Below, piece by piece: positions 55 to 17,007 of a stretch of DNA of 17,007 bases (positions are counted from its first letter, which is position 1; each line of letters begins with the position of its first letter). Made by a program: the position numbers and the translations under genes. Where the stretch lies: contig NW_021824986.1 in the NCBI RefSeq assembly GCF_006345805.1, positions 1 through 17,007 of the forward strand, in the 5' to 3' direction. This stretch comes from Octopus sinensis. Its lineage: Eukaryota. The notes under the pieces were generated by a model. That model ran no database searches. It was given only the letters and a program-made list of their open reading frames with translations, and was not told the DNA's origin.

Positions 55-283
55 TTAGTGAGATTTCTGATCTTGTTTGCTCAAAATAATTTTACTTATA
101 TCAGGCTCTATGTTCGACAAAGCTACTCGCATATCATCTTGTACCCGTAGTCTATTTCTATATTTTGTTTTTAGAAAAGTCAGACACGACATCGCCATTT
201 CACAGTGATAAGTAGTGGGGAATGCAAGTATTGATTCCAATGCAGTTTTACTCAAAATGGGGAATTCTTTCGCCATCTGACAC
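55..283 (-). pseudogene. hAT (Buster-type) transposase, last exon (C-terminal dimerisation domain)
   Basis: (W)CQMAKEFPILSKTALESILAFPTTYHCEMAMS...KTKYRNRL...KQDQKSH* matches the FPTTYLCE..FS / KNKYRNRL / ..SH* ending of Buster-family transposases. It is preceded by a ttgttag acceptor ending at 284. Confidence 0.88.
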
Positions 284-459
284 CTAACAATAAAAAATAA
301 TTGTGACCGGTTTTATTTTGGACCAGGTTTTATTTTGGACCGACATGCTCAGATTATAATAAAATTATATTTGTTTTAAATTTCTCCACTAAAAAAAAGA
401 TAAAAATATAAAATTAATAAAAAACCTTAATATTTATTTAATTAATTAACGCGTGCATA

Positions 460-848
460 ATGGTTCTAGTGGATTTAACCAGAGAAGAATTGAAAATAAT
501 CAGTGATATTAAGAATAGTATATTAATTGATTCCAATATGGACAAAAGAGAAAAGTATCGCCTTAAAAAATCGCAAATTTTTTTAATTTTGTTGACGAAA
601 AGGCATATTTTGTAAAGAATAACAAAAATCTTCGTTTTTTTGTTCGGAAGAGAGAGAACTTAAGCTAAAAACTATCAAAGTAAGCTAATATATTGAATTT
701 AAAGCTATTACATAATGAAAATCATTTTGGGCGTGATCTGATGTTAAGCCTATTAAGAAATAAAATTTACTGCGTCAAACGTTCTGAAATCTTCGATGTA
801 ATTAAATCATGTGTTGAGTGCCTTTTTGTTACTAATAAGAGAACATAA
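460..848 (+). pseudogene. Truncated Ginger-like integrase: N-terminal region plus HHCC zinc-binding motif, no catalytic core
   Basis: MVLVDLTREEL...DKREKYRLKK...LRFFCSEERELKLKTIK | 25-nt GT-AG intron 680-704 | LLHNENHFGRDLM...KSCVEC...KRT*. It needs two single-base corrections in homopolymer runs (~570, ~640) and is clearly homologous to the ORF at 15954-16241. Confidence 0.8.
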
Positions 849-891
849 CTTTAACTTAAATTAGGATTTTAGTGTTAGGGTTAAAATTTTG

Positions 892-1458
892 TTTAGGGTT
901 AAGGTTAAAATGTTTAGCGTTAAGGAGAAAATGTTTAGGGTTAGGGTTAAAAATTTGTTTAGGGTTAAGGTTAAAATTTTTAGGGTTAGGGTTAAAATGT
1001 TTAGGGTTAAGGAGAAAATGTTTAGCGTTAAGGAGAAAATGTTTAGGGTTAAGGAGAAAATGTTTAGCGTTAAGGAGAAAATGTTTAGGGTTAGGGTTAA
1101 AATGTTTAGGGTTAAGGAGAAAATGTTTAGGGTTAGGGTTAAAAATTTGTTTAGGGTTAAGGTTAAAATTTTTAGGGTTAGGGTTAAAATGTTTAGGGTT
1201 AGGGTTAAAAAATTGTTTAGGGTTAAGGTTAAAATGTTTAGGGTTAGGGTTAAAATGTTTAGGGTTAGGGTTAAAAAATTGTTTAGGGTTAAGGTTAAAA
1301 TGTTTAAGGTTAGGGTTAAAAATTTGTTTAGGGTTAAGGTTAAAATTTTTAGGGTTAGGGTTAAAATGTTTAGGGTTAGGGTTAAAAAATTGTTTAGGGT
1401 TAAGGTTAAAATGTTTAGGGTTAAGGAGAAAATGTTTAGGGTTAGGGTTGAAATTTTG
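892..1458 (+). repeat. Telomere-derived minisatellite: 26 units of 21 or 24 nt, consensus TTTAGGGTTAGGGTTAAAATG
   Basis: Manual parsing gives 19 x 21-nt and 7 x 24-nt units (567 bp). Degenerate TTAGGG-like flanks extend roughly 860-1620. Confidence 0.95.
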
Positions 1459-1927
1459 TTAGTTGAGATTAAGATTTTTATAATTAAAATTAAATTAAGT
1501 TTTTTATCGTTTGGACAACTATTAAAAATAGGGGTTTTAAATTAAATTGAAAATTAGGGTGTTTTAGAATTAGGATTTTGGGTGTTAGGGCTATTATAGA
1601 ATGTATATGTGTTAGGGTTATATTTTTAAAATTTTTAATTAATAGAATTATATTTAGTTTTTAATTTTTTTAGAATGGAAGACCAATTTTTAAATAATAT
1701 CGTAACGGCAACGCTGTAATTATCAAATTTGTTGATTGGTTGGGTTGTGCATACTTCCATTTTTTAAAAAACTAAATGAAATCAAGAAAAAACTATACAA
1801 AAGTATAATTAACATTAACTAATATATTTTTAGTGGAATAAAATTTTTATTATTGATTTTTTTTCTCGGTCCAAAATAAAACCTGGTCCAAAAAAAAACC
1901 TGTGACAATAATTATTAATGAGAATAC

Positions 1928-2070
1928 CAAAAATCTAATAATGAAGTACATTTGAAAATAATCTGAGCAGACTGATTACATTGAAGTTCAATCAAGCTCT
2001 GCTGAAAATTGAGTTCCTGATATTTTTTAAATGAGGTCACGAAAGGTTGAACGATCCAGTTTGGAATTGT
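1928..2070 (-). pseudogene. hAT (Buster-type) transposase, penultimate exon fragment
   Basis: TIPNWIVQPF...QSLIELQCNQSAQIIFKCTSLLDFW matches the WI.NPF...LIEL..D...F....L..FW segment. It ends at a GT donor (1927) in phase with 55-283. Confidence 0.82.
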
Positions 2071-2260
2071 TATTTTTCGAAAATTCCTGGGGACCACTAA
2101 AAATTTTCTGGGGACCACGATTGAGAACCGCTTGATTAATTTCAATGTTTTTGATTTATACTTAATTGTACAATTAGTTTTAACTTTAATATATTTTTAT
2201 TTTTCGAAAATTCCTAGGGACCACTAAAAATTTTCTGGGGACCACGGTTGAGAACCGCTG
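2071..2260. repeat. Tandemly duplicated 63-64 bp hAT terminal sequence
   Basis: 2071-2134 and 2198-2260 are near-identical (tatttttcgaaaattcct...ggggaccac..ttgagaaccgct). Confidence 0.85.
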
Positions 2261-2789: not shown

Positions 2790-3556
2790 TAGGACACCTT
2801 AGATGTGGCGAGCCATCCGCGCTACCCATTCTATTGTGTTACACACTTGTCAAAATTGGCCTAGATTTAAAACCTGTTGTTTAAATTACTTTTCATTCTT
2901 ATTTTTAAATTCTTTACTGTTTTCAAAAAATATAAAATAAAACTTAGGTCCAAAATTATAAAATAAAGCTTTTCAAATAGAAGAAATTAGATATGCTTTC
3001 TTCGAATTAGTAGCTCAGGCAAAGCAAAATTTGAAATAAATATCGATTACGTCAAAAATATACTTGATACCACGATTCAGACAAGGGACTCAAATCTATC
3101 ATATTTATCTGGTAACCTTCTCTTGGAGCTTTTGCTTTAATCTGTATCAAAGAAATATGAGCTTTTAATGGCTGACATTGAGCACAGTCTCTAGATTCAG
3201 CACATACTTTTTGGATAATTGATTTCTTTATACTAAAAAAATAATTATATCAGACTATTCTTTCATTTTGTTTACTTCATAATGCGTTTTCAAAAGTGAA
3301 TTTTAACACATAGATTTCATAGTTTCCAATTTATTTTTAGCAATTACAATTTTTTGTTCCATAATTGGTTTTAACTCAGAACCTTTTAGTAAAAAACATT
3401 TTTTGTTATTTAGAAATCTTGTCTTTTTCATTTCAGTTAAACTTCCATCAATCGTGTCGCTTTCAAATAAGAAACTATGTTTTTGTACTATATAATAATT
3501 AATACTAAAATTTTAAGCAGCATCTTTGACAAAACAAAAACATCTGAATATCATAA
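2790..3556 (-). pseudogene. Decayed Ginger/TDD-like integrase related to element B (14355-15948)
   Basis: With frameshifts it reads YKNIVSYLK..TIDGSLTEMKKTRFL...CAQCQPLKAHISLIQIKAKAPREGYQINMIDLS...KYIFDVIDIY...LFYNFGP...ENSKEFKN, colinear with element B (QPLKTK...AKEPRER YQVDLVDL...VIDIY...GPP...DNGTEF). No TIRs were found. Confidence 0.7.
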
Positions 3557-3659
3557 TCTAAATATGGGTTAAAATACACTGCGAATTCGAATTGGAAAAA
3601 ATAGAGTAGGTGGAAACCCTCTTTTTGGGAAAAACCTTGCTTTTGGGAAAATATTTTTA

Positions 3660-3860
3660 ACAAAAATATCAGGAAACAGTCACTGCAGCTTCGCCCCGAA
3701 CTGAAACCACATTGCTGCGTGAGCAGAACGTTCTTCTCTTCGGTCAGGAAATCGAGGCGCTTTGCCATGATTTTTTCCATTAACCTTGAGATGGTTGGGA
3801 TAAGGCTTATTGGAGGGTAGCTACTAGCTCGATTCGTCGGCTTTCCAGGTTTCTTGATCA
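3660..3860 (-). mobile_element. Non-LTR retrotransposon reverse transcriptase fragment (Jockey/I-like, RT domains 0-1)
   Basis: IKKPGKPTNRASSYPPISLIPTISRLMEKIMAKRL...QQCGFSSGRSCSD matches the PKPGK..P.SYRPISL...K..E...Q.GFR..RS motif. Confidence 0.82.
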
Positions 3861-3861
3861 A

Positions 3862-4009
3862 GAAATATTTTCCCAGAGGTGAGGCACTATATTTCCTACT
3901 GTATGATAATCATTTTTTACTATAGAGCACTATGTAACCATTGTATGGGAAGCAGAAAAACTGTTTGTCATTTGTCAACCTAGGGCAGTAAAATTCTCAA
4001 TGTCAGAAG
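3862..4009 (+). mobile_element. R4/Dong-like non-LTR fragment (zinc-knuckle region)
   Basis: About 125 bp is nearly identical to 6210-6341. It translates with frameshifts as EALYFLL.D...ALCNHCM...KTVCH.ST. Confidence 0.65.
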
Positions 4010-4690: not shown

Positions 4691-5542
4691 TTATTCATAA
4701 CGTCTAAATCCAAAATGTAGGTGATCGTCTTTGTATGCATCATAAAAATCGTATTTCATTTGGGTCGACAAGTTCTTAAAATATTTAAAAACTAGATCAG
4801 TTGCGTTTGTTTGATGGGAAATTTCCTGGAGCCATGATCTCCCATTTTCTGAAATTCCATAAACCTTGATCAAATCATTGATAAATTCATCAAGTTTGTC
4901 AAGCAATATGATTTTGTAGTCGATATATTGTGGGGAACATAAATCAGTCATTGAGGTCCAGTGTTCGTTCAATTTGGCTTTTTTTCGAGATTGAATTATT
5001 AAATAACCGACAAATTGTTCGAACGTTACAAATTTTTCAGGATTACCAGTTATGGCTTTTCGAACATCCTGAACAAAGTAAGGTGACTTCAAAGTAATCT
5101 TTTTGAATCGGATGAATTTGTCTAAGTATGCGGAAACTATACGTTCGACTGGATGTCTCACTATTAAAATTTTTTGAACGCCTTCCATCTCGTTTATTGA
5201 ATGTATTTTAGGTTTTATTTGATAATTCGCATTTATAAATGGGAGATCGTGAATTTCACTTTTTCTGAATTTATAACAATTTGTGATGTTGTTCTCAGCA
5301 CAGTAAGTTATTACGAACCATTTATACATTGTTGTTGACCCAACTTTAGGGATTTTACAATAGAATAATTTTTGTTTATCGATAAAGTAAAAATGAGTGT
5401 TTTCTTTGAAAGATTCATTATTTGTGGGATTTCTAAATGTTTTTACATTCACGTCGCATTCGAATTTTGAAAACAAAATGAAGAAAAACAACAACAGGAG
5501 TAAAATACATGTTTTGTATAAACAATGCTTTCGTGTCAGCAT
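4691..5542 (-). CDS. Golgi-type carbohydrate sulfotransferase (Sulfotransfer_2 / HNK-1ST, CHST8-14 family), 283 aa, intronless
   Basis: Intact ORF with an N-terminal type II membrane anchor (CILLLLLFFFILF), 5'-PAPS motif YCKIPKVGSTT, 3'-PAPS motif IVRHPVERIVSAY, the HW..M..LC segment and C-terminal Y..D...FGF. Confidence 0.92.
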   Translation of the reverse strand: MLTRKHCLYKTCILLLLLFFFILFSKFECDVNVKTFRNPTNNESFKENTHFYFIDKQKLFYCKIPKVGSTTMYKWFVITYCAENNITNCYKFRKSEIHDLPFINANYQIKPKIHSINEMEGVQKILIVRHPVERIVSAYLDKFIRFKKITLKSPYFVQDVRKAITGNPEKFVTFEQFVGYLIIQSRKKAKLNEHWTSMTDLCSPQYIDYKIILLDKLDEFINDLIKVYGISENGRSWLQEISHQTNATDLVFKYFKNLSTQMKYDFYDAYKDDHLHFGFRRYE

Positions 5543-6094: not shown

Positions 6095-6570
6095 TTGAAG
6101 AAATCACGAATTTCAATTTCTGATTCAGCCAAATGTCTAAACGATCAGAATGTTGATGTAAAAACTTCAAAGGGGTGGATTTGGAAAAGGAATGTTTCCT
6201 CAGAAGTAAGCACTATATTGCCTACTGTAAGATAAGTATTTTTACTTTTAACCAATAGAGCACTATGTAACCATTGTATGTGAAGCAGAAAAACTGTTTG
6301 TCATTTTTCAACCCAGGGCAGTAAAATCCTCAAGTCAGAAGGCATAACGAAGTCTTGAGATGTATTTATTTGCACCTATGTAGGAATTATGGAATCAGCA
6401 AAGTAACAAAATTGAAAGGGTACTCAGTCTATCAATCCTATCAACACAAAATGTTGAATTACGAGAATTCAGTGTAACAAGCCTGATATATTTGTGTATG
6501 ACAAAATAAGAAACGAAATTATCATCATAAAAGTGGGAGTCACTTCCCAGGACCACCTGAAGCAGCAGCA
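6095..6570 (+). mobile_element. R4/Dong-like non-LTR retrotransposon fragment: CCHC knuckle plus restriction-like endonuclease, decayed
   Basis: ...ALYCLL*DK...LCNHCM..KTVCH.ST...RRHNEVLRCIYLHLCRNYGISK...NKPDIFVYDKIRNEIIIIKVGVTSQD matches the CxxC..H / RHN / PD..(D/E)xG motifs of REL-clade elements. Confidence 0.8.
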
Positions 6571-6956: not shown

Positions 6957-9900
6957 CTATTTATCAGGCAGTTCAAATGGCTCAGGTGGCTGTGGCTCAC
7001 CGTCTTCCTCAGTAGTCGAAATCTTGGTCGCGGGGACTACACAATCAATCCAATCAAAATACTCGGCATAAACTCAACATAACACTCATCTCCATCAGGA
7101 TCAGTGTCCTTGGCAATAAATATATATCCTCCAGCAGTCACATTCTTCACGAGGTTATATCGAGTATCACTCGCAGATATATACTCTCTCTGCCAATACA
7201 CTCCCCAACTCACCTGCTGTGGTAAAACTCGTGCTGGGTTCTTTAAAAGACTAAACCCCTCACTAGACTCGTCCATCTTTGTTTCCTCCTCAACTGTAGT
7301 ACCCACTTCGGTCTCTGACATTACATTAAAGAGAAACCACCTTTCTGGACTTGATCCACATTCTCCTTTGACAGCCCCTTCGCCTGTTTGTTAGAATAAC
7401 ACATTACTTGGAGTCTCTCAATCTTACGACGTTGGAAACGAGAACCCACTGACCTGGAAGCACTAGACTTGCCTCGAGTCTTCTTTTCCACTACGAGAGG
7501 AATGTAGGCAAATTTGGAAGGTGGTATGTTGGACAGAATATTGACTGCCGGCATCTACCAATATATCCCTCTCTAATGAACCTTCAAGTCCTCGTTGAGT
7601 ATGACTACTCCTGTTGGGGAGAAGGCCAATGACAGAGTGAGAGAGAGTGGAAACCAGTACCAGAACTGCTGGAACACCAACAACCCCACAATAGCCTTCA
7701 TATTCTCAAGTCCACTTTCATTTTCTAGTGCAATTGTGACATTCCCACTCCCTGTGACTCTTTATTCACAATTATAACCCGCATAGGCTATTCCTAGCCC
7801 AATTATTGCTCCAAACTTATTAACCACTCCTTCATGCTTGTCTGATATAATCTGAGTAACCATTTTTGTATATTTTTTCTATATTTATACATATAAACAG
7901 TACATGTGGAGAACTTTCCCCAGTTTCTTCAATTAATACCATTCCCCCCGCAATGAAGGCAGCCTGTCTTACATAACTGGCCTTATCATGCCACAACGAC
8001 TCCAATATTTTACATACAAACTAAAAATAAACATATTAGTAGACAAACCTGGTCGCCCGTGCCAGCATAGGCAATTCCCAAGGCCATAGCTGATCCATAC
8101 CGAACATGAGGATTATAACTATCCACCAATGACTTAACTATGCTCAAACAGACTTTAGGAACTCTACATTGAATCAACACATATACCTATAAAGGACAAA
8201 TCCGAGGGATATTGCTGCTGCTCGTCTCACATCATCACTCACATCAGTGACAATCATTTTGAGTAGTTTGCGGACTGCTGTGTCATCCCCAGTGCCACAA
8301 TAGGCCATTGCCAGTGCATAAATCCCCATCCATCGATGAATAGGGTCTTGGTGGGCAACCAATACTTTAATGTGCTCATCTGCCTCACTCCCTCTTCCAT
8401 ATAATATCAGTGCCACTCCAACAGCAATCCCTCGTAGTGTCTTTTCGTGCTTATTTACTGCTGCAATCTAAAAAAGTGAGACTATTACAATACAGAGAGC
8501 AGTGTGGTTATTATATACTCATTCTGAGTCCCAACTAGTATCATTCCTACTGAAATAGCAGCTGCTTCCCCCACGACTGAATCAGAGTGGATTGGTCCAA
8601 GCAGTGACTCCACAACTTCCTCATTCCCACTACCCAATCCAGCCAAACCAATAGCCAATGCTGCTCCATGTCGCACAGTCTATTTATATCAACACATTCT
8701 CACAGTTGACTGATTTTCATTAGAATATTTACACAGATAATCCATAATATCACCACCCCGTGCACAATATATGAATCCTGTCAATCATTGTTATAAACTA
8801 CCCAACCCAGTGAGTAAAGTCCTCCCCCAATCGCATACTGAGAGGTACTGACACTATCCTTGGGCAAATAGGCGTCAAGGACAGTCATTGCATTGCCTTC
8901 ATTGCTCTAAATGATGTCAACCCTCCTAATAAACCTTATGAATAACCCCAAGAGAACCAATAGCAATAAAACGAGACCAATTACTAAATCGAGACACCCA
9001 ATCACTCAAATGTCTAATAATCAGTACATAATAACCCCACCTGAACATATAATCACATGTCGAGCCATAATTAATAAATGAATTTGCTATTATAATGGCA
9101 GTGTTACACACCGAGTCAATTGAACGGACCTATGCTATACAAAATAATATACCTGTGCGAATTGAAGTAGTGTTTGTGATTCATCACGACTGTTGTGTGC
9201 AAGAAACTGCAACTGAAACTTGGCTGGGAGAGAACCATCAAGTATTTTACATATTCTATCAATTGGGCTATTTTCTACCAATTCTTGCACTAATTTGAAC
9301 TCAATACCATCAACAGTGTTCTTCAACTTGTCAACCACAGCAGCAGAGGTCTTGTAGGTTACACAATCGTAGAGATCAAAGGCCAACTGATAAGCCAAGG
9401 CAATATTATTCTATTAATTTACTCACAAAGTCACAAACATGTTCAGAAGTCAAAGAAGCCAACAGATTAGCAAGAAATTCAATATCGTTCAATTTAACTG
9501 CACACTTGAATTAATTTGAATAAAAATTCAAAACTTTAAACACCAGAAAATAATTCTTTCTAGAAGATGCTAGAAGGATCTCAATGAATATTCTCAACGA
9601 GCGTTTAAAAAACTCTGCATCATCACATGTAGTTAATAAAATATGATAAACATAATCAAATGGCATTTCCTACATTACAAAATAATTAAAAAATAAATAC
9701 TACACTGTCATCGTAGTATTTAATAGCCATTTCCAGCATAGACAGATCCCGACACTCCACAGAAATGCCCAAAGCCTTCAAATATATTAAAAAATAAACA
9801 ACCTGATGCAATTTACAGTCAACAAGACACCGTTCAAACATAATATCAACCACCAACTTTAATTTAGACATTATTGGTGCAGTAGAGGCATCATTTCCAT

Positions 9901-10415
9901 CTTTTTTGAGGGCAGAATACATGTCAATACATTTTCCTAAGGAAGGGATATTCAGTTCTGGCCTACCTGCTATGGTCTCGGAGTACAAAGAACATTCCCC
10001 CACATTAAACAAGTCCCCAGCCATGAAAGCATAGGAGACGGCATCATCAAAGGACTGGAGATGGTAGTGAATCTAAAGATCAAAGCAAATTGGTTACTTT
10101 TGAGCATATTAAAGCTGACAATTGTCGGTATGGAAAGTCTTGTAGGTCAGCTAGTTTTTCACTTTTATTAACTTTATTTAAAGATACATTTCTGTGATAG
10201 ATACTGCCATTTCGTACCAGAATGTGCTAGAAAGTGAGTCTAATTTTTGTAGGGCGATTTTCTGTGGATTATTAAGTGTTAACTAAGGTTGAATTGATAC
10301 CTTCAGTTCGTAGTCATCTTCTTCTAATAATGATAATATTCCTTCTATAAAAGAATTAGTAAATGATAATTATTTAAATATTAAATATCTAATCACAACC
10401 AGAAGTGGATAACAT
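6957..10415 (-). CDS. PSMD1: 26S proteasome regulatory subunit RPN2 (PSMD1), about 925 aa, 25 exons
   Basis: Manual splicing of 24 GT-AG introns (55,39,26,25,30,27,34,30,28,23,27,28,29,24,26,23,28,25,27,27,24,26,24,26 nt) gives a 2778-nt frame. It runs from [16 protein letters not shown] through the PC repeats ([23 protein letters not shown]) and FWYWFPL, NPARVLP to [13 protein letters not shown]. Confidence 0.95.
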
Positions 10416-10714
10416 AATGTGATCCGGTCTACAATAAATTTAAAAATATAATTTAATTTATATTAAATAATATTATAATAATTATATGAACTAATAAAAC
10501 TTATATTTCGATTTTTGACTTTATTTCTTCTTTTCAACAATCTGTTCAATCAGGTTTACCACAAAATATTCCTTAAATTCAAAAAGTAAAATAAATTATA
10601 TTAGTTTAATAAATTGATATTAATATGATTTGTTAATTTTAATAATAATTCAATTAATAGAATAACGTGTAGTTCTGGTTGGTTGTTTGGTTTAAATAGT
10701 TAGATTTCAAATTC
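10416..10714. promoter_or_regulatory. Putative bidirectional promoter shared by RPN2 and RPL17
   Basis: 299-bp, extremely AT-rich spacer between two divergent ATGs (10415 minus, 10715 plus). No specific motif was recognised. Confidence 0.6.
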
Positions 10715-11330
10715 ATGGCTGATTTTTGTGTAAAGCCTTTAAATCCATTAAAAAGTAATTTTTATAGACATTTAAATTTTAGGTGCCAAAGCTCGTTCGA
10801 ATTACTGCCGAGTTCATTTCAAAGTACCTTTTTTTCCTCATCCCAGAATACCTACGAAGTAGCCAGATCTCTCAAACGAATGGACCTCAAAAGAGCAGAG
10901 TCCTTCCTCAATAATGTCATTGAACATAAGGAAATTGTCCCCTTCTATCGATACAAGTACGGGGTTGGAAGAAAGGCCCAAGTAATGGAAATGTGACTAA
11001 GCAAACAGTGCAAAGGAAAGGGGACATCTCAGGGACGGTGGCCTGAAAAGAGTGTCAAATTTATCCAAAATGTGTTGGAAAATGCCAAACAAAATGCAAA
11101 TTCGAATGTTTTTATGTTTATAAGAGTAGATTAGTCCCTCGATATGAATCGGCTGTACATTGAACATATCGCAATCAATAAGGCACCAAAGAATAGGCGA
11201 AGAGTGTATAGGGCACATGGGAGAATTAATCGTATCTTTATTATTACTTAATTTAGCCTTCAATTCTCATCCTTGCCATATTCAAATTATTCTCTCAGAG
11301 AGGCCTATTAATGTCCCCGATAAACTTTAA
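10715..11330 (+). CDS. RPL17: 60S ribosomal protein L17 (uL22), 161 aa, 6 exons
   Basis: Introns 10755-10782 (28 nt), 10824-10846 (23), 10982-11008 (27), 11108-11134 (27) and 11232-11256 (25) give a 486-nt frame containing [22 protein letters not shown] and [21 protein letters not shown]. Confidence 0.97.
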
Positions 11331-13762
11331 ATTCTTTAGTTCTTTGTCGTTATTTTTATCCTGTTCCTAATTTTTTGTCTTATTTAAATTTGTGTGGATT
11401 CTAAAATATGCATTTTTTATTAGATTTTAAATTTGGGAGGTTCTGGCTTGTTTAAGTAACTTAACTTTCACCACATCAGGGGAAAAGATACTGATTAAAA
11501 ACCAAAGGAAGAATCCTTTAGTGAATAACTTATTTCCAGTTTATTTTATACATCCATTCGGGATGGCTTTCTGAAATTACGAATCAGAATCATGAACAAA
11601 TATATCTATGTTATTTTTATTACAAATAGTACAACTGCTGAAGTTATTATTTGCTTTGTGGGCATTTATGTGTTGACTTCTATGCTTGACTTATATAAAT
11701 AAAAGTATTTATTGGCTTTGGAAATTAAACTGTGAATCTGTTCTGCAGAAAGAAATATATAGAATTAATAAACACAGTCTATATAAATTGACAGTCAAAC
11801 ATATTTTCCTAAAACTGGTAAAGGCAACCAGACCAAACGTGGCTAAATCAAGATTACATAAAAACGTACAGTGTCCGACAAAATAAATTGGATTTGCTTT
11901 GATTTGACTTTATTCTTAAATACTAACTGTAGATTATAATGTTGATTGACTGCTACTTCGAGATAAATAATAATTGCATTGTATTGACAATTCATGTATA
12001 TTCCAGACTAACGAAATGTAGTTGCTTTATTTTCGATTGTTTCAAAAATATAAAAACTTACTTTCAACAATAAATCTCTCAAAAACAATTCCATAACTCA
12101 GAGAACACCCACAAAGTGAAGCCAAATAAAACAAGTCTCATTTAGTTTTTGCTACTTAATCGGCGAAATGAAATCAAAAATCGTAACGATAAAAATATTA
12201 TCCAAAGAGAAAATTTTATGTTGTAAATTCAGAAAATTTTATGTTGTAAATTCTAAGGACAACCTGTAAATCGAAAAAAGCCCAGTTTGCCAATATTAAG
12301 AGAACACATTTTTGTGGAAATATATAGTTAATAAAATTTTTTTAATATTATTGATTATTGAGAAAACAAATAAAGTTACGAATAGGCATGTTAATAAAAT
12401 TTATTTTAATACTCGTTTTTAAAATTTATTAGACTGATCAATTAAAGTGTTCAATTTAGGAATTGTATACTTTACTATAAAATGTGATTTTTTTTAGCAT
12501 ATTTAATTTTTTTTTCAATTTAGAATAATACGTACAAAATGTCAATTTCAGAAAAATGTTAAATGTGATTTAAGAACTCGACTCTCTTTCCATCTGTTAT
12601 AAACTTTCAACCAGCACTGTGGTCTATCTATTTAATATATTCTAAATCTATAATGCATTATTGGGAAATTTCAAACTGCGCTGATCTGGATGTGATTAAA
12701 CTTTCAGTGGGCAGCTTAAGAGATCTAAAAACAGGCATAAAAGTATAACGCTATATTATTTTTATTCCAGCAGATAACAAACTGCATCTATTTAATGAGT
12801 TGTCATGTACATGTTCTTCTAAATCAGGGGTCGGTAGGATTTTTGTCTTCGCGCGCCAAAATTTTATTTTTGTATGCCAAACGAGAAAAAATCCTTATCG
12901 GTCGCAAAAATAACGATATATAAGAATCCTCTTGGCTGAGACAGAGAATCTCATTTCGTTTGCAATCGTGAACGGTAACGCACAAATTATCTGTTTTGCT
13001 TAAAACGAACCTTTCCAGGGCAACGTTTGCAGATTTATTAGTTAGAAATGATTACATAGAAGTGAATTTATTTTAGTCATTATCTGACTAGTTGCTAAAT
13101 GTAATATATTTTTAAGATTTGAATTGGTCATCCTCGTTCTTAGACAATTTTTACATTATTCATTTGGAGAATAACTGATGACATAAAAATGTGATTCCAA
13201 ATATACAAGCCATTTTCTTTGCATTGTCGATTTTTGACACATACAAAATTTTCGTAGAAGCTCAAAATATCTAATTTGATTTAAGTATAGTGTCGCATTA
13301 AATTTCAAGTAATTCCATTTAATAAAAACCTGGTACTGTCTCAATTTAAACATCAAATGGAATTGAAAAAATGTTGAAAAGATTTTGAAAAACCTACAAA
13401 ATTATATGTCACCGGTTTTTGCTGGGACCCGGCATCTCCTTGGACCGCCCTAAAAATCGACTAAATCGCTTTATTTATATCTAAAATTATTAAATAGTTA
13501 AAGTTTAACCCTAAAATGCTGATAGATTCCAATTTACTGAAATTTCTTTCTTGTACAAAACCAGCATACTCCAACATTCGTTATTAACGCCGTTGAACTT
13601 TAAATATTTAATTGATATCTGGATTACCAGTCGAAAAAAATGAAAACTATTTATATTTTTTTTAAATAAAAATTAAATAAAAAAACACAAAAAGTATTAT
13701 TCCGTGATAAAAATACATTTTTATTTTTGTCGCGTGATAAAATCTCAACTTTATCCCAAAAG

Positions 13763-13991
13763 CTAACCTAACTTCGACCTTATCGCTAACCCTATCCCTC
13801 ACCTTATCCCTATCCCTAACCCCAACTTTATCCCTAACCTTATCCCTAACCCTAATCCCAACCTTATCCCTAACCCTAATCCCAACCTTATCCCTAACCT
13901 TATCCCTAACCTTATCATTATCCCTAACCCCAACCTTATCCCTAACTCTAACCTTATCCCTATCCCTAACCCCAACCTATCCTTAACCCTT
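13763..13991 (-). repeat. Telomere-like array: TTAGGG variants, mainly the 12-mer AGGGATAAGGTT interspersed with GGGTTA
   Basis: The plus strand is a run of CCCTAA/CCCTAT/CCTTAT hexamers. Confidence 0.92.
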
Positions 13992-14099
13992 ATTTTAGCA
14001 CAAGCCTTATTTTTTATAACAAAAACATTAATCAATTTTATAAAGTCTCGCAATATTTGTTCCTTTTACGACAATTCAAATCAAAATCAATTCATATTT

Positions 14100-14349
14100 C
14101 TCTGGCAATAACTTTATATTTTTTCGTATCAATTTGATCATATACTGGATATCATTTTTTCTCCTGCTTTCGTTAGAGTCTCGTATGTTGATAACAAATT
14201 TTTTGCAATATTTTTATCATCAGTTACTTCATTTTCAACAAATTGAATTTCAGCATCAGCATCTTCTCCAGAATTTGAATCATTCACTTCCGCATATCGG
14301 CTTGCAATATTTCAGAACGACTAACACCATAGATCCTTGTCTTCAGATG
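14100..14349 (-). pseudogene. 3' piece of the element A2 integrase gene (end of the HH region fused to an acidic C-terminal segment; DDE core absent)
   Basis: After removing element B and one ACTAA copy, the frame continues NHFERDRMIS|HLKTRIYGVSRSEILQ. It then shifts into RYAEVNDSNSGEDADAEIQFVENE...TLTKAGEKMI with no DxD/E core. Confidence 0.6.
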
Positions 14350-14354
14350 ACTAA

Positions 14355-15948
14355 TGTCACGCGCCATAAATGAAACGCGTGCCTAAAGTGAAACGCTGTG
14401 ACCTTGAATTTAACCTTCAATTAAGCTCTTGACAATTATCAAGTCAATATTAAAGATATTAAAGATGATTGCGCACTTTGAGATAATATTATCGAAATGA
14501 GATTTGCCAACATTGTAAAGGATGATCAGGAGTATAAGAATATTCTTGATTTTTAAAAATAATACAATACCAGAAGATTTTTCAAGACTAAAAAGATTTC
14601 GTTTTCTCAAAAAAAGTAGAATTTCGTAATCTGGAGGTACTATTAAATCTAATGATAGGTGTGCTATATTATAAACAATCTGATGAAACAAAATATTGGT
14701 AATTGCCTCAAATGATTTCGAATCCATGAAACTGCATTGTGAAAGGATTCATTCAATTTATCACTATGGATTTAATAAATGGGAGTATTGCAAAATAATT
14801 TTTGCATAATCAATCGAAACATAATTAGGGATGTAATATCATCATGCCACAAATGTCAGCGAAGTCAGCCCTTAAAGACAAAATATCCACTAGTCAACAT
14901 AGTAGCCAAAGAACCTCGAGAACGGTTCATTCAATAGCTTATTTTTTAGCTATCAGTTGATTTAGTCGATCTTTCGTTTTATGCAGATATAAATGATTCC
15001 TATAAATATCTTATGAATGTCATAGATATTTATTCAAATTTTGCTTTGCTAAAAAATAGAAATATAAAGAAGCAGTTACAGTTTCGGAATCATTGAAAAC
15101 TATATTTCTTTCCTATGGTCCACCAAAAATTCTGCAGTCTGACAACGGAACAGAATTTGTTAATTCAGAAATAACGTCATTATGTGAAGAATTTAAAATA
15201 ATTCATAAAAGGGGACGTCCAAGACATCCAGAATCACAGGGACAAGTGGAGCGTTGCAATCAAACCATTTGCAGATGGATTCAAAAAGAACTCACAGACA
15301 AACAGAAAAAATGGGTGGATGTGTTAGAAAAAATTGTATATCAGTACAATATTTCAATTCATTCTTCTATAAATATGTCACCATTTATGGCTTTTTTCCG
15401 AATAGAGGATATAACATTTCTTATTATATGATGATGAATTAATTGAAGAACATGAAAATCAACTATCATAAATGACAAATATCTTGAAAGAATGGAACGA
15501 AATTTTTCAAAAACATTGAAAGAAATTGCAATTGGAAATAATGTTTTGCTGAAAAAAGATTTTGATACAAATCAAAGGACGAAGAAGCGAAAATTAGAAT
15601 CTTTTTATCATCAACAAATCTTTACTGTTGAGATTTAATTTCAAATAATAGAGTTAAAATAAAAGATCAAGATGGAAATGAAAAAATAGTATTTAAATCA
15701 CAAGTTAAAAAATTTAGACAGGTAAATTTTCAGGTTAAAATATTTTTAATTTTTTGGTAATTTTAAAATGGCTAACCATTATTTAAATAAATTGTTAATC
15801 TTTCAAACGATAATAATAAAATTGGTTTCTCGGTTTTATTCCTGTTTTCATCAAAGGATTGTTAATTTTATTTTCGAGGTTTTTTGTGGTTTTCTCAAGG
15901 TTCACAGCGTTTCACTTTAGGCACGCGTTTCATCCATTGCGCGCGACA
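14355..15948 (+). mobile_element. Second Ginger/TDD-like family (element B), near full length, nested in A2
   Basis: 53/54-bp TIRs at 14355-14407 and 15895-15948, TGT...ACA ends, 5-bp TSD ACTAA at 14350-14354 and 15949-15953. Confidence 0.92.
14497..15760 (+). pseudogene. Gypsy-like (rve, KRBA2/SCAND3-type) integrase/transposase with HHCC and DDE core, frameshifted
   Basis: RIH..YHYG...CHKC, (R)YQVDLVDL, KILQSDNGTEF, GRPRHPESQGQVERCNQT, YN...H.S..MSPF. There are several frameshifts and two putative micro-introns (14637-14658, 22 nt; 14925-14949, 25 nt). Confidence 0.88.
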
Positions 15949-15953
15949 ACTAA

Positions 15954-16241
15954 TCATTCGATCTCTTTCAAAATGATTAGAATTATGCTCGGACTATTTT
16001 TAGAAAATACAACCAATACTTCAATCATTAGTAATTTTAGTTCTGCATCTTCAATACAAAAAAATCGTAGTTTTAGGCCATTTCTTCGTATATAAGCTTT
16101 TCCATCAGCAAAATAAAAGGTTTCTGCATGTTGTTTGACTTTATATCTCTCCTTCTTATCCAAAACTTCATCCAAATTCTGGAATTCTTTGTATTTTTTG
16201 ATTTTTGACAAGGTATCTCTAGTCAAAACCAGTAGACCCAT
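15954..16241 (-). pseudogene. 5' piece of the element A2 integrase gene
   Basis: MGLLVLTRDTL...LDKKERYKVKQHAETFYFADGKAY...LRFFCIEDAELKLLMIE | 26-nt intron 16019-15994 | SEHNSNHFERDRM. It aligns along its length with 460-848. Confidence 0.82.
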
Positions 16242-16537
16242 TTTTCACGTGGCAATTTAATTTTATAAAAGTAATATTCTTTTTTAAAAATAATTAATAA
16301 ATATGTGTTTATGACTGTTAATAAACTATTTTCAATATTTTTTATTTGAAAATACGCTTGCGGTCCCAGCAGATGCCGGGTCCCAGCAAAAACCGGTGAC
16401 ATTATATATAAGCATTTTACTCTTAAATCTATAAAACGTGATGAAAATTTCGATCTCAATTCCATAACTATGTTTGCATATTCCGGAACATCAGTCGGAT
16501 TCGTAGAAAGAAAAATTACACAACTTCAATTTAAAAA

Positions 16538-17007
16538 TTTTTTTTTTTTTTTTTTTAAAAAATTAAACTACTAAGTAAAGTCAACAAACTAATAAATTCT
16601 CCCAGCGAGACGGAGGGAACAGCTGTTGCCACGCATGACAGCCAGCAGGATCCTCTGAATGAGGAAAGTAAATTCCCTAGGGTCCTTGGACCGCGAAGAA
16701 CAAAGATGTCCCAATTTCTTTAGGGAAGTGAGGGTCCCGGAGCCAAAGACGCCGGAAGTCTCGACAACGATTGGCCAAAACCAAAAGTCATCCAACAAAG
16801 ACTGATATTTCCGGCACTTCGAAAGCTCAGCCTTATTAGCACGAGACCCAGCAAGAGAGGCCGATTCGTTGATGAAAGACTTTGAGAAGGTATCCACGCA
16901 AGTGGAATCCCAGACCAAAGGTCTCCCAGAATAAAACGAGAACAACGTAGAGCCGTCCGGCCTTTTCCCGTCACCACGGTCGAGACCCTTAGGCTCAAGG
17001 ACAGAAG
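16538..17007 (-). mobile_element. 3' end of a CRE/SLACS-like non-LTR retrotransposon (REL endonuclease, short 3' UTR, poly(A) tail)
   Basis: Open frame from the window edge: EPKGLDRGDGKRPDGSTL...LVWDSTCVDT...KCRKY...PIVVETSGVFG...QRILLAVMRGN, stop at 16589. A 19-nt T run at 16538-16556 is the poly(A) tail. The region is noticeably GC-richer than its flanks. Confidence 0.85.

Follow-up and report, generated by a model that had tools for sequence, protein, structure and literature searches.

Ginger2/Tdd-like transposons nested within remnants of Buster-type hAT elements in probable dicyemid DNA deposited as Octopus sinensis

Background

Clusters of transposons nested within one another, the so-called graveyards, have classically been described from maize intergenic regions and Drosophila heterochromatin. 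The Ginger2/Tdd DNA transposons are defined by TGTNR termini, terminal inverted repeats (TIRs) of tens of bp, an integrase combining H2C2 and DDE modules, and an AT-rich RTATAY target preference (PMC2836005). About 50-180 bp have been reported for their TIRs, and their target-site duplications (TSDs) are 4 bp long in metazoans and 5 bp long in TDD-4/5 (PMC2836005). Here we describe a 17,007-nt stretch of DNA from Octopus sinensis (contig NW_021824986.1, assembly GCF_006345805.1; hereafter the window, whose coordinates are used throughout), in which two related elements of apparent Ginger2/Tdd type, A1 and A2, lie in short GT-AG stretches of two different hAT transposon remnants, hAT-1 and hAT-2, and a further such element, B, lies within A2. 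It is probable that this is a pile-up of nested transposons brought about by a preference for AT-rich targets together with chance, and not by recognition of introns or of hAT genes; the pattern requires no new mechanism.

With the classical nested clusters the locus shares its architecture: a repeat R contains hAT-2, which contains A2, which contains B, with a long interspersed nuclear element (LINE) in addition, the younger elements sitting inside the older ones with their own intact TSDs. It differs from them in its miniature scale, within a compact genome of about 67 Mb. The hAT hosts resemble members of the Buster clade (TcBuster, SPIN, ZBED5/8, FAM200 and GTF2IRD2) in the C-terminal motifs ...ELQ.D...FW...YP.L...PF.TTY.CE..FS...KTKYRNRL and in TIRs that start CAGNG, and they are unlike them in that hAT-1 is internally deleted and hAT-2 heavily decayed, each with a family-specific micro-intron (a putative one for hAT-2).

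Integration by retroviral-type integrases may be biased or tethered, as in Ty1, Ty3, Ty5, Tf1 and HIV-LEDGF, and introners create or occupy introns. The A elements share with them an integrase-class DDE enzyme and the idea of an insertion that is non-random relative to gene structure, whereas no tethering domain or host factor is indicated. The A elements are also unlike spliced-out introners, being kilobases long in a genome with introns of ~26 nt and lying in dead copies. The TBE elements of Oxytricha, which are of Tc1/mariner type, carry terminal C4A4 repeats. The likeness here extends just to the phrase 'DNA transposon with telomere-like repeats', as in A1 and A2 the TTAGGG motif is internal, single or paired within minisatellite units of 12-66 nt.

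Element A2 and its insertion site

A2 (13407..16401, minus strand) appears to be a non-autonomous Ginger2/Tdd-like DNA transposon of 2995 bp, or 1396 bp once the nested element B is subtracted. Its inverted ends start TGTCA and run for 43 nt at 95% complementarity (41/43; TGTCACCGG, from a repeat finder and a script); the start was also obtained as TGTCACCGGTTTTTGCTGGGACC, for which direct reading, repeat finder and script agree. They are flanked by a perfect 5-bp duplication, TTATA, with its left copy at 13402..13406 and its right copy at 16402..16406. With the element removed and one TTATA kept, the minus strand reads ...CGT TTT ATA GAT TTA AGA|GTAAAATGCTTATATATAATTTTGTAG|GTT TTT CAA AAT..., the 27-nt stretch between the bars being made up of 16420-16407 (its 5' part, 16407..16420, GTAAAATGCTTATA), one TSD copy and 13401-13394 (its 3' part, 13394..13401, ...TTTTGTAG). 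The coordinates, the duplication, the reconstructed empty site and the 27-nt GT-AG stretch had all been given in the initial annotation and are borne out at the sequence level.

A2 retains an N-terminal remnant of an open reading frame (ORF) at 15954-16241(-) and, after subtraction of B, a frameshifted H-x4-H ... CxxC stretch read by eye alone; a Pfam scan of the construct gave no match. It lies in the sense orientation relative to hAT-2. Two further contigs, both deposited as Octopus sinensis, were compared, namely VCDQ01008110.1 of GCA_006345805.1 (L008) and VCDQ01009780.1 (L009). Because an A2-like copy in L009, 92-95% identical, still holds part of the integrase catalytic core, A2 is a deletion derivative. 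The same L009 copy was dropped as evidence on target choice, since its ends cannot be recognised and a Tc1/mariner fragment is fused to it.

The host hAT-2 and its 27-nt stretch

Remnants of hAT-2 border the 27 nt on both sides. The upstream coding remnant (16421..16537, minus strand), which ends ...TDVPEYANIVMELRSKFSSRFIDLR, is bounded upstream by the poly(A) of a LINE, and the downstream one (13100..13393, minus strand; VFQNLFNIFSIPFDV*IE...ELLEI*CD...ITFLCHQLFS) is a decayed hAT C-terminal region. A TIR is present at 12825..12844 on the plus strand (CAGGGGTCGGTAGG...), preceded at 12817-12824 by the 8-bp target TTCTAAAT. It begins exactly where repeat R (11863..12817) stops in the window, and R runs on in L008 (...GTTCTAAAT|GCTGAG), which thus represents a natural empty site. 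Repeat R is non-coding and occurs in at least three copies (in the window and at L008:1-215 and 9012-10522), of which the window copy hosts hAT-2 and the L008 repeat hosts an A1-like copy; no ORF of 67 aa or more and no Buster profile match was found in it. R was itself considered as a non-autonomous hAT, given a CAGTG near its left edge, and rejected: the homology with L008 starts some bases earlier, no inverted partner was found and the profile does not match.

TIRs of hAT elements begin with YARNG. Those seen here conform to this, with CAGGG for hAT-2 at 12825(+) and CAGCG for hAT-1 at 2260(-). One 8-bp flank is visible for each element, TTCTAAAT for hAT-2 and ACTTAGAT for hAT-1, the other hAT ends lying outside the window; both 8-mers have TA at positions 4-5, which we take to be the Buster-type target pattern.

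The similarity of hAT-2 to other hATs is weak but real. It has no Pfam match, no PDB match and no BLASTP match to hAT-1, and the full-length Buster profile does not detect it in the raw frames. With its stops masked, the translation scores 12.6 bits on the Buster profile, a score reached by 0 of 2000 shuffles. The best phmmer E-value among 150 Buster proteins is 2e-5, and the downstream remnant alone gives 3e-5. BLASTP aligns hAT-2 at E 9e-5, with no gap across the junction once the 27 nt are removed, to hAT-3 (L008:2212-3727), a third Buster-type hAT of the same genome whose ORF ends are intact and whose middle (profile positions ~205-315) is deleted. Landmarks in the remnant include S/IPF-DV-IE, ELLEI[stop]CD (compare ELQCN in hAT-1) and ITFLCHQLFS (compare TTYLCE..FS).

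An intron-like appearance is by itself of little value in this DNA. Some GT(20-35 nt)AG encloses 58-73% of all window positions, so the GT-AG borders are uninformative, and because such enclosure is so common protein colinearity is the one basis for the intron calls made here. Without the 27 nt, hAT-2 reads RFIDLR|VFQNLFNIFSIPF, to be compared with RFSDFKKITILCSFFVSPF in hAT-3, and the distance from RF to PF is 19 residues in both. Removal lifts the scores by ~5 bits, to 9.9 from 4.7 on the Buster profile and to 26.6 from 21.6 in the hAT-3 alignment, and when the 31-residue upstream exon alone was shuffled, the real score was reached in 8 of 2000 trials. The stretch, GT...AG and 81% AT, has a length inside the 23-34-nt range of the introns of the host genes in the window. 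Taken together, these features suggest that the 27 nt are probably a micro-intron of hAT-2, which we term putative. The initial annotation had called them an intron outright: the stretch stands, and its intron status has moderate backing from the colinearity with hAT-3, the gain of ~5 bits and the shuffles.

It is conceivable that only one of the two intron cases in the window is real, the 27 nt being a lineage-specific insertion or filler, in which event the coincidence shrinks to both A elements lying in hAT C-terminal remnants. Several observations are compatible with this. The reading frame is no test, since 27 is 9x3, and an in-frame TAG proves nothing where 8 other stops are present; the spacer between YFP and W..PF differs in length among Buster proteins, and hAT-3 has no intron there. 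The lack of a Pfam match for hAT-2, a gain of just ~5 bits and the uninformative GT-AG point the same way. Yet the ungapped 19 residues shared with hAT-3 across the junction, the scarcity of shuffled upstream exons that do as well, and a length and AT content that suit the host introns all tell against filler, and we hold this alternative to be doubtful. hAT-3 lacks introns at both the hAT-1 and the hAT-2 positions, and the micro-introns of these transposase genes would therefore be family-specific.

Order of insertions

Both hAT hosts are dead, and neither is a working gene or carries an intact transposase, although the initial annotation had treated them as transposase genes. In the 132 codons of the hAT-2 construct there are 8 in-frame stops, every one of them in the downstream piece, and 117 nt upstream of the A2 site hAT-2 is interrupted by the LINE poly(A) (16538..16556, minus strand, 19 A), which belongs to a non-LTR retrotransposon with an ORF end at 16589-17007(-). 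When an intact hAT sequence of the same genome was subjected to a simple AT-biased neutral decay in simulation, 8 or more stops arose in no more than 1.3% of runs for divergences up to 0.15 substitutions per site, and ~0.2-0.5 substitutions per site were needed. The probability of finding 2 or fewer mismatches in 43 is ~7e-3 if each A2 arm had drifted by 0.1, and ~1e-6 at 0.2. From the 8 stops in hAT-2, as against the 41/43 matches between the A2 ends and a 5/5 TSD, we infer that A2 entered an already dead hAT-2, long after its death; the other relative ages of hosts and elements given here are estimates of the same kind.

The element boundaries, the TSDs and the order of nesting are directly visible in the window, and they suggest the following course. 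Repeat R would first have been struck by a Buster-type hAT, hAT-2, which then decayed and also took the LINE insertion. Much later A2 would have integrated by ordinary DDE-integrase cut-and-paste, with a 5-bp staggered cut at TTATA, and A2 would in turn have received B, another Ginger2-like element. For A1 the same course would have run independently, its host being a deletion copy of another Buster hAT.

This order bears on a proposal of the initial annotation that selection or hitch-hiking is responsible, only intronic inserts allowing the host hAT to go on making transposase, so that a composite of hAT and A element survives and is carried along. For A2 it is contradicted: its host, with 8 stops and a LINE, had accumulated ~0.2 or more substitutions per site, as against A2 ends that are still 95% identical, and was dead before A2 arrived.

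Element A1, its host hAT-1 and a copy elsewhere

A1 (302..1907, with its ORF remnant on the plus strand) belongs to the same family as A2. Its TSD, ATAAT, stands at 297-301 and 1908-1912, and its inverted ends of 54 nt, 89% complementary, start TGTGACCGG and TGTCACAGG. It matches the Pfam Integrase_H2C2 model at E 1.7e-5 with 25.3 bits, just under the 25.5 cut-off, and it is antisense to its host. The empty site contains a 33-nt GT-AG stretch formed by 1927-1913, the TSD and 296-284.

Profile alignments place this 33-nt stretch (3' part 284..296, 5' part 1913-1927, minus strand) between the last exon of hAT-1 (58..283, minus strand; CQMAKEFPILSK...QKSH), which holds the hAT dimerisation domain in an intact ORF, and the preceding exon (1928..2067, minus strand; ...IPNWIVQPFVTSF...ELQCNQSAQIIFKCTSLLDFW). 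Aligned to a profile built from 55 Buster-type C-termini, on which hAT-1 scores 138 bits, the 33 nt amount to an 11-residue insert with two stops, located exactly between ...LLDFW and CQMAKEFP, and the alignment strongly supports reading them as an intron. The dimerisation domain is recognised by Pfam Dimer_Tnp_hAT (PF05699) with 22.2 bits against a cut-off of 21.4. The hAT-1 C-terminus gave no match in a word-indexed protein search, and an exhaustive representative search yielded 1550 homologues at E<=1e-3. As the relatives bear ZBED5-like or ZBED8-like names and belong to the Pfam families FAM200-GTF2IRD2-like and FAM200-ZBED5, hAT-1 can be placed in the Buster clade, and the Buster-group assignment of the initial annotation holds.

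Almost nothing separates the 5' TIR of hAT-1 (2235..2260, minus strand; CAGCGGTTCTCAACCGTGGTCCCCAG; second, degenerate copy at 2108-2133) from the last 125 codons, which are stop-free. The full-length Buster profile covers only positions 413-535 (90.8 bits) and nothing upstream of them; hAT-1 is an internally deleted, non-autonomous copy without most of the transposase, including its catalytic part.

The terminal 78 nt of this 5' end are doubled, with copies at 2066-2143 and 2193-2270 in direct orientation, 127 nt apart and 90% identical. The doubled unit consists of the TIR and GGGGACCAC subterminal repeats, and it may have arisen by tandem duplication of the end or belong to a second copy that is truncated.

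A third insertion of family A is available from L008, where an A1 copy, 97% identical, starts at L008:215. It is inserted in repeat R at ...CTATAA[TGCAT]TATTGG, a position equivalent to window 12655-12659, and the empty site can be read both in the window's R and in the other R copy of L008. A LINE truncates the far end of the insertion. This copy shows that A1 moves independently of hAT-1.

The selection proposal thus fares little better for A1 than for A2. In its favour, hAT-1 has no stop in its last 125 codons, and mobilisation of a composite is in principle conceivable, provided that both ends of the hAT, the far one of which lies outside the window, were intact. Against it, hAT-1 is an internal-deletion copy that lacks most of the transposase with its catalytic part, an insert of 1.6-3 kb in an intron of 27-33 nt would probably abolish micro-intron splicing, and the 97%-identical A1 copy in L008 is not inside hAT-1. 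The co-transposing composites that the initial annotation had envisaged at other loci do not appear, as no second hAT-1 plus A1 or hAT-2 plus A2 combination was seen in L008 or L009. Selection is implausible for A1, and overall we consider it highly improbable.

Choice of insertion sites

The four insertions that can be compared are AAAA[TTATA]TATAA (A2), AAAAA[ATAAT]TATTA (A1), GATG[ACTAA]TCAT (B) and TATAA[TGCAT]TATTG (the A1 copy in L008). All four lie inside other transposons; hAT introns received two of the three family-A insertions and two of the four in the superfamily. B (14355..15948, plus strand), a second Ginger2/Tdd-like transposon, is 1.6 kb long and has one ORF; it interrupts the A2 sequence that codes for the zinc finger, hence an exon and not an intron, and is flanked by a perfect 5-bp TSD, ACTAA, at 14350-14354 and 15949-15953. 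The 'two out of two' of the initial annotation is accordingly true of the window and fails beyond it, where the L008 copy in repeat R makes the count 2/3.

Of the explanations offered there, the combination of an AT-rich target with AT-rich micro-introns is the one favoured by our results, given the Ginger2/Tdd class of the elements and the composition of the introns. The two introns are 81-85% AT, as against 69% for the remaining hAT-derived DNA, and integrases favouring AT-rich, weakly palindromic DNA would tend to fall into a micro-intron as the most AT-rich stretch of a coding-derived hAT. Insertions into old transposons would be neutral and persist, while those into host genes would presumably be purged. 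For site counts A1 and A2 were removed from the window, and sites with at least 14/15 A/T around the duplication, as at both observed sites, were taken as eligible. Within the hAT-derived DNA, which makes up 11% of the window, 22% of such sites are in the two introns, as opposed to 4% under a uniform model. We infer that the AT preference is the cause of the intronic location.

Several points weigh against so simple an account. Of the 622 sites with at least 14/15 AT just 16 are in the introns, and composition alone therefore leaves the coincidence unlikely: the chance per insertion of striking either intron is ~2.6% under the AT model and 0.4% under the uniform one, which under the AT model gives ~7e-4 for two of two and ~2e-3 for two of three, or ~5% for two of two conditional on insertion into hAT DNA. 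The sample is tiny, the question was put post hoc and the introns were recognised through the elements, so that these figures are not real p-values in either direction. Moreover, the AT preference of the family is taken from the Ginger2 literature and from the four sites, one of which (TGCAT) is not AT-only. AT preference and nesting would account for much of the pattern, with a residual excess possible, and the caution of the initial annotation that two cases leave room for chance was correct.

Such an excess could reflect real targeting, by a family-A integrase acting in trans, of micro-intron features or of Buster hAT DNA or chromatin; the candidates would be a short AT-rich stretch with a T-tract beside YAG, or hAT chromatin, and with either one hAT introns would be struck much more frequently than their composition implies. 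Two of the three resolved family-A sites are in the single intron of a ~440-nt hAT C-terminal fragment, where 22% would be expected given insertion into hAT DNA, and the TSD is central in both introns, at a distance of 14-15 nt from the 5' and of 8-13 nt from the 3' splice site. The L008 site, too, is within a 29-nt GT...AG on one strand, but such enclosure is expected at 58-73% of positions, and the site itself lies in repeat R, which has neither hAT similarity nor an ORF. B, of the same superfamily, went into coding sequence; A1 is antisense and A2 sense relative to the host; hAT-2 was long dead when struck, so that neither splicing nor transposase expression could have been sensed; and the sites have no motif in common beyond AT richness. 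Targeting, which the initial annotation had also raised, is weakened by the non-coding location of the L008 copy, the coding location of B and the opposite orientations, and we regard it as unlikely.

Real targeting would add a rare example of intron-like DNA, or of another family of transposons, being recognised by a cut-and-paste integrase transposon, and would bear on the interplay of transposons and introns in genomes with the shortest animal introns. The specific form in which the integrase prefers micro-intron-like DNA (an AT-rich segment with a T-tract and GC-richer flanks) inside Buster hATs seems quite improbable; were it true, one transposon superfamily would systematically colonise the introns of another and could ride inside non-autonomous hAT copies. 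Under the nested pile-up that we prefer, the value of the locus as evidence is descriptive: it presents Ginger2/Tdd-like elements with 5-bp duplications and TTAGGG-minisatellite derivatives in a dicyemid-like genome, and Buster hATs with family-specific micro-introns in such a genome.

Relationships of the A and B elements

The elements of families A and B are here classed as Ginger2/Tdd-like, A being non-autonomous, an assignment made on the features below and not on phylogeny. The termini follow TGTNR ... YNACA, with TGTCA at both ends of A2, TGTGA and TGTCA in A1, and TGTCA and TGTCG in B. The TIRs measure 43 nt (A2), 54 nt (A1) and 47 nt (B) at 89-95% complementarity, which is the low end of the reported range, and those of B, 91% complementary, start TGTCACGCG. 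The TSDs are of 5 bp (TTATA, ATAAT, ACTAA), a length that fits TDD-4/5, the Dictyostelium members, and is unlike the 4 bp reported for metazoan Ginger2. The four target sites are AT-rich overall, though too few for a logo, and the A2 site contains ATATAT.

The coding content agrees with this picture, in that there is a single integrase ORF with H2C2 and an rve (DDE) core and no reverse transcriptase or RNase H nearby. The class is read from the rve domain of B, whose decayed and frameshifted integrase matches Pfam rve at 4e-12, and from the H2C2 matches of A1 and B, both below cut-off, that of B being the weaker (E 0.006, 17.2 bits vs 25.5). Of a B-type integrase, no more than the N-terminal part and the H2C2 zinc finger remain in A1 and A2, the finger of A2 being the one read by eye. 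They differ from the 2010 description of Ginger2 in being deletion derivatives with a TTAGGG minisatellite, which that description does not mention.

The closest intact relatives of the B integrase are stand-alone integrases of ~400-440 aa, 48-51% identical, with rve only or with rve and H2C2. Clear TIRs were looked for in the Logan contigs with the closest intact integrases (L011, L012) and none were found. The matches to B include a KRBA2-like protein [Littorina saxatilis] at E 7e-18; KRBA2 is reported to be derived from Ginger2 (PMC3575427).

Relatives of the B integrase are scattered over Logan and other assemblies, microsporidia (Nosema granulosis, Enteropsectra breve), bdelloid and monogonont rotifers and Rhizophagus, and this patchy spread among small or parasitic eukaryotes might point to horizontal transfer.

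When metagenome contigs were scanned for the family-A end TGTSACCGGTTTTNNNTKGGACC, 7 single matches came up, all treated as chance: 6/7 lie in contigs of 49-67% GC, and the seventh (L006, 35% GC) has no TIR-like extension past the match and no paired inverted copy.

In both A1 and A2 a minisatellite built around TTAGGG follows the ORF remnant in the same relative orientation. That of A1 (868-1454) has units of 21/45/66 nt, and that of A2 (13743..13995, with the G-rich strand being the minus strand, downstream of the ORF remnant) has a 12-nt unit, TTAGGGATAAGG. TTAGGG occurs 54 times in the window where 7.5 occurrences are expected, always inside minisatellite units of 12-66 nt. The initial annotation had called the elements telomere-bearing; the TTAGGG minisatellites are there, but the literal sense of the term was rejected, as TTAGGG never exceeds two tandem units.

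The unit structure of the minisatellite differs between A1 and A2, the TTAGGG core being common to both. In the L008 copy of A1 the minisatellite (L008:782-976) likewise stands after the ORF remnant, its G-rich strand running in the same orientation as the ORF.

Genomic setting

The window is most likely dicyemid DNA. Introns as short as these are known among animals only from dicyemids and myxobolid myxozoans (PMC13644364). Dicyema japonicum was collected from the host O. sinensis, and its genome has 36.7% GC and 49% repeats (PMC6736024). The micro-introns, the copies of A1 and R in O. sinensis contigs (97% and 86-99% identical, respectively, in L008/L009) and the fact that O. sinensis hosts Dicyema japonicum are the reasons for this attribution. 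L008 and L009 are probably dicyemid DNA from the octopus renal sac, a transfer of transposons between host and parasite being less likely. The locus thereby flags probable dicyemid DNA and chimeric gene models in the Octopus sinensis assembly. The A ORFs, used as queries, matched two gene models of the Octopus sinensis annotation.

Both of these models are chimeras: 'ZBED8-like', on L008, fuses the initial 32 residues of the A1 ORF with hAT-3, and LOC115231247 fuses a Tc1/mariner helix-turn-helix domain with an A2-like integrase piece. Exact-protein look-ups with five ORFs of the window, namely those of the sulfotransferase, A1, A2, B and hAT-1, gave no match.

Fragments of Buster-type hATs number at least four in the 47 kb examined (hAT-1, hAT-2, hAT-3 and L009:167-457), plus one marginal profile match. 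Non-LTR fragments are found at 3505-3861(-), which has an RVT_1 match, at 16589-17007(-), and at L008:1001-2008 and L008:4360-6186; the insertion in hAT-2 and the one that cuts short the L008 copy of A1 are two of these.

Host-gene coding DNA in the window has 41-45% GC, as compared with 33% GC (67% AT) for the window as a whole. A gene for a proteasome subunit with PC repeats (~7000-10100, minus strand; PC_rep 1e-13) has GT-AG introns that include ones of 23, 23, 24, 26, 26, 29 and 34 nt in a greedy reconstruction that is imperfect elsewhere. A gene resembling ribosomal protein L17/uL22 (10715-11330, plus strand) was recognised by eye alone. An intron-less sulfotransferase gene lies at 4691-5542 on the minus strand (Sulfotransfer_2, 2e-28). 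The sulfotransferase region is flanked by an 88-nt direct repeat (3913-4000 / 6246-6333, 91% identical, 2.3 kb apart), which may be a short interspersed element present twice or may mark the two ends of a larger unit.

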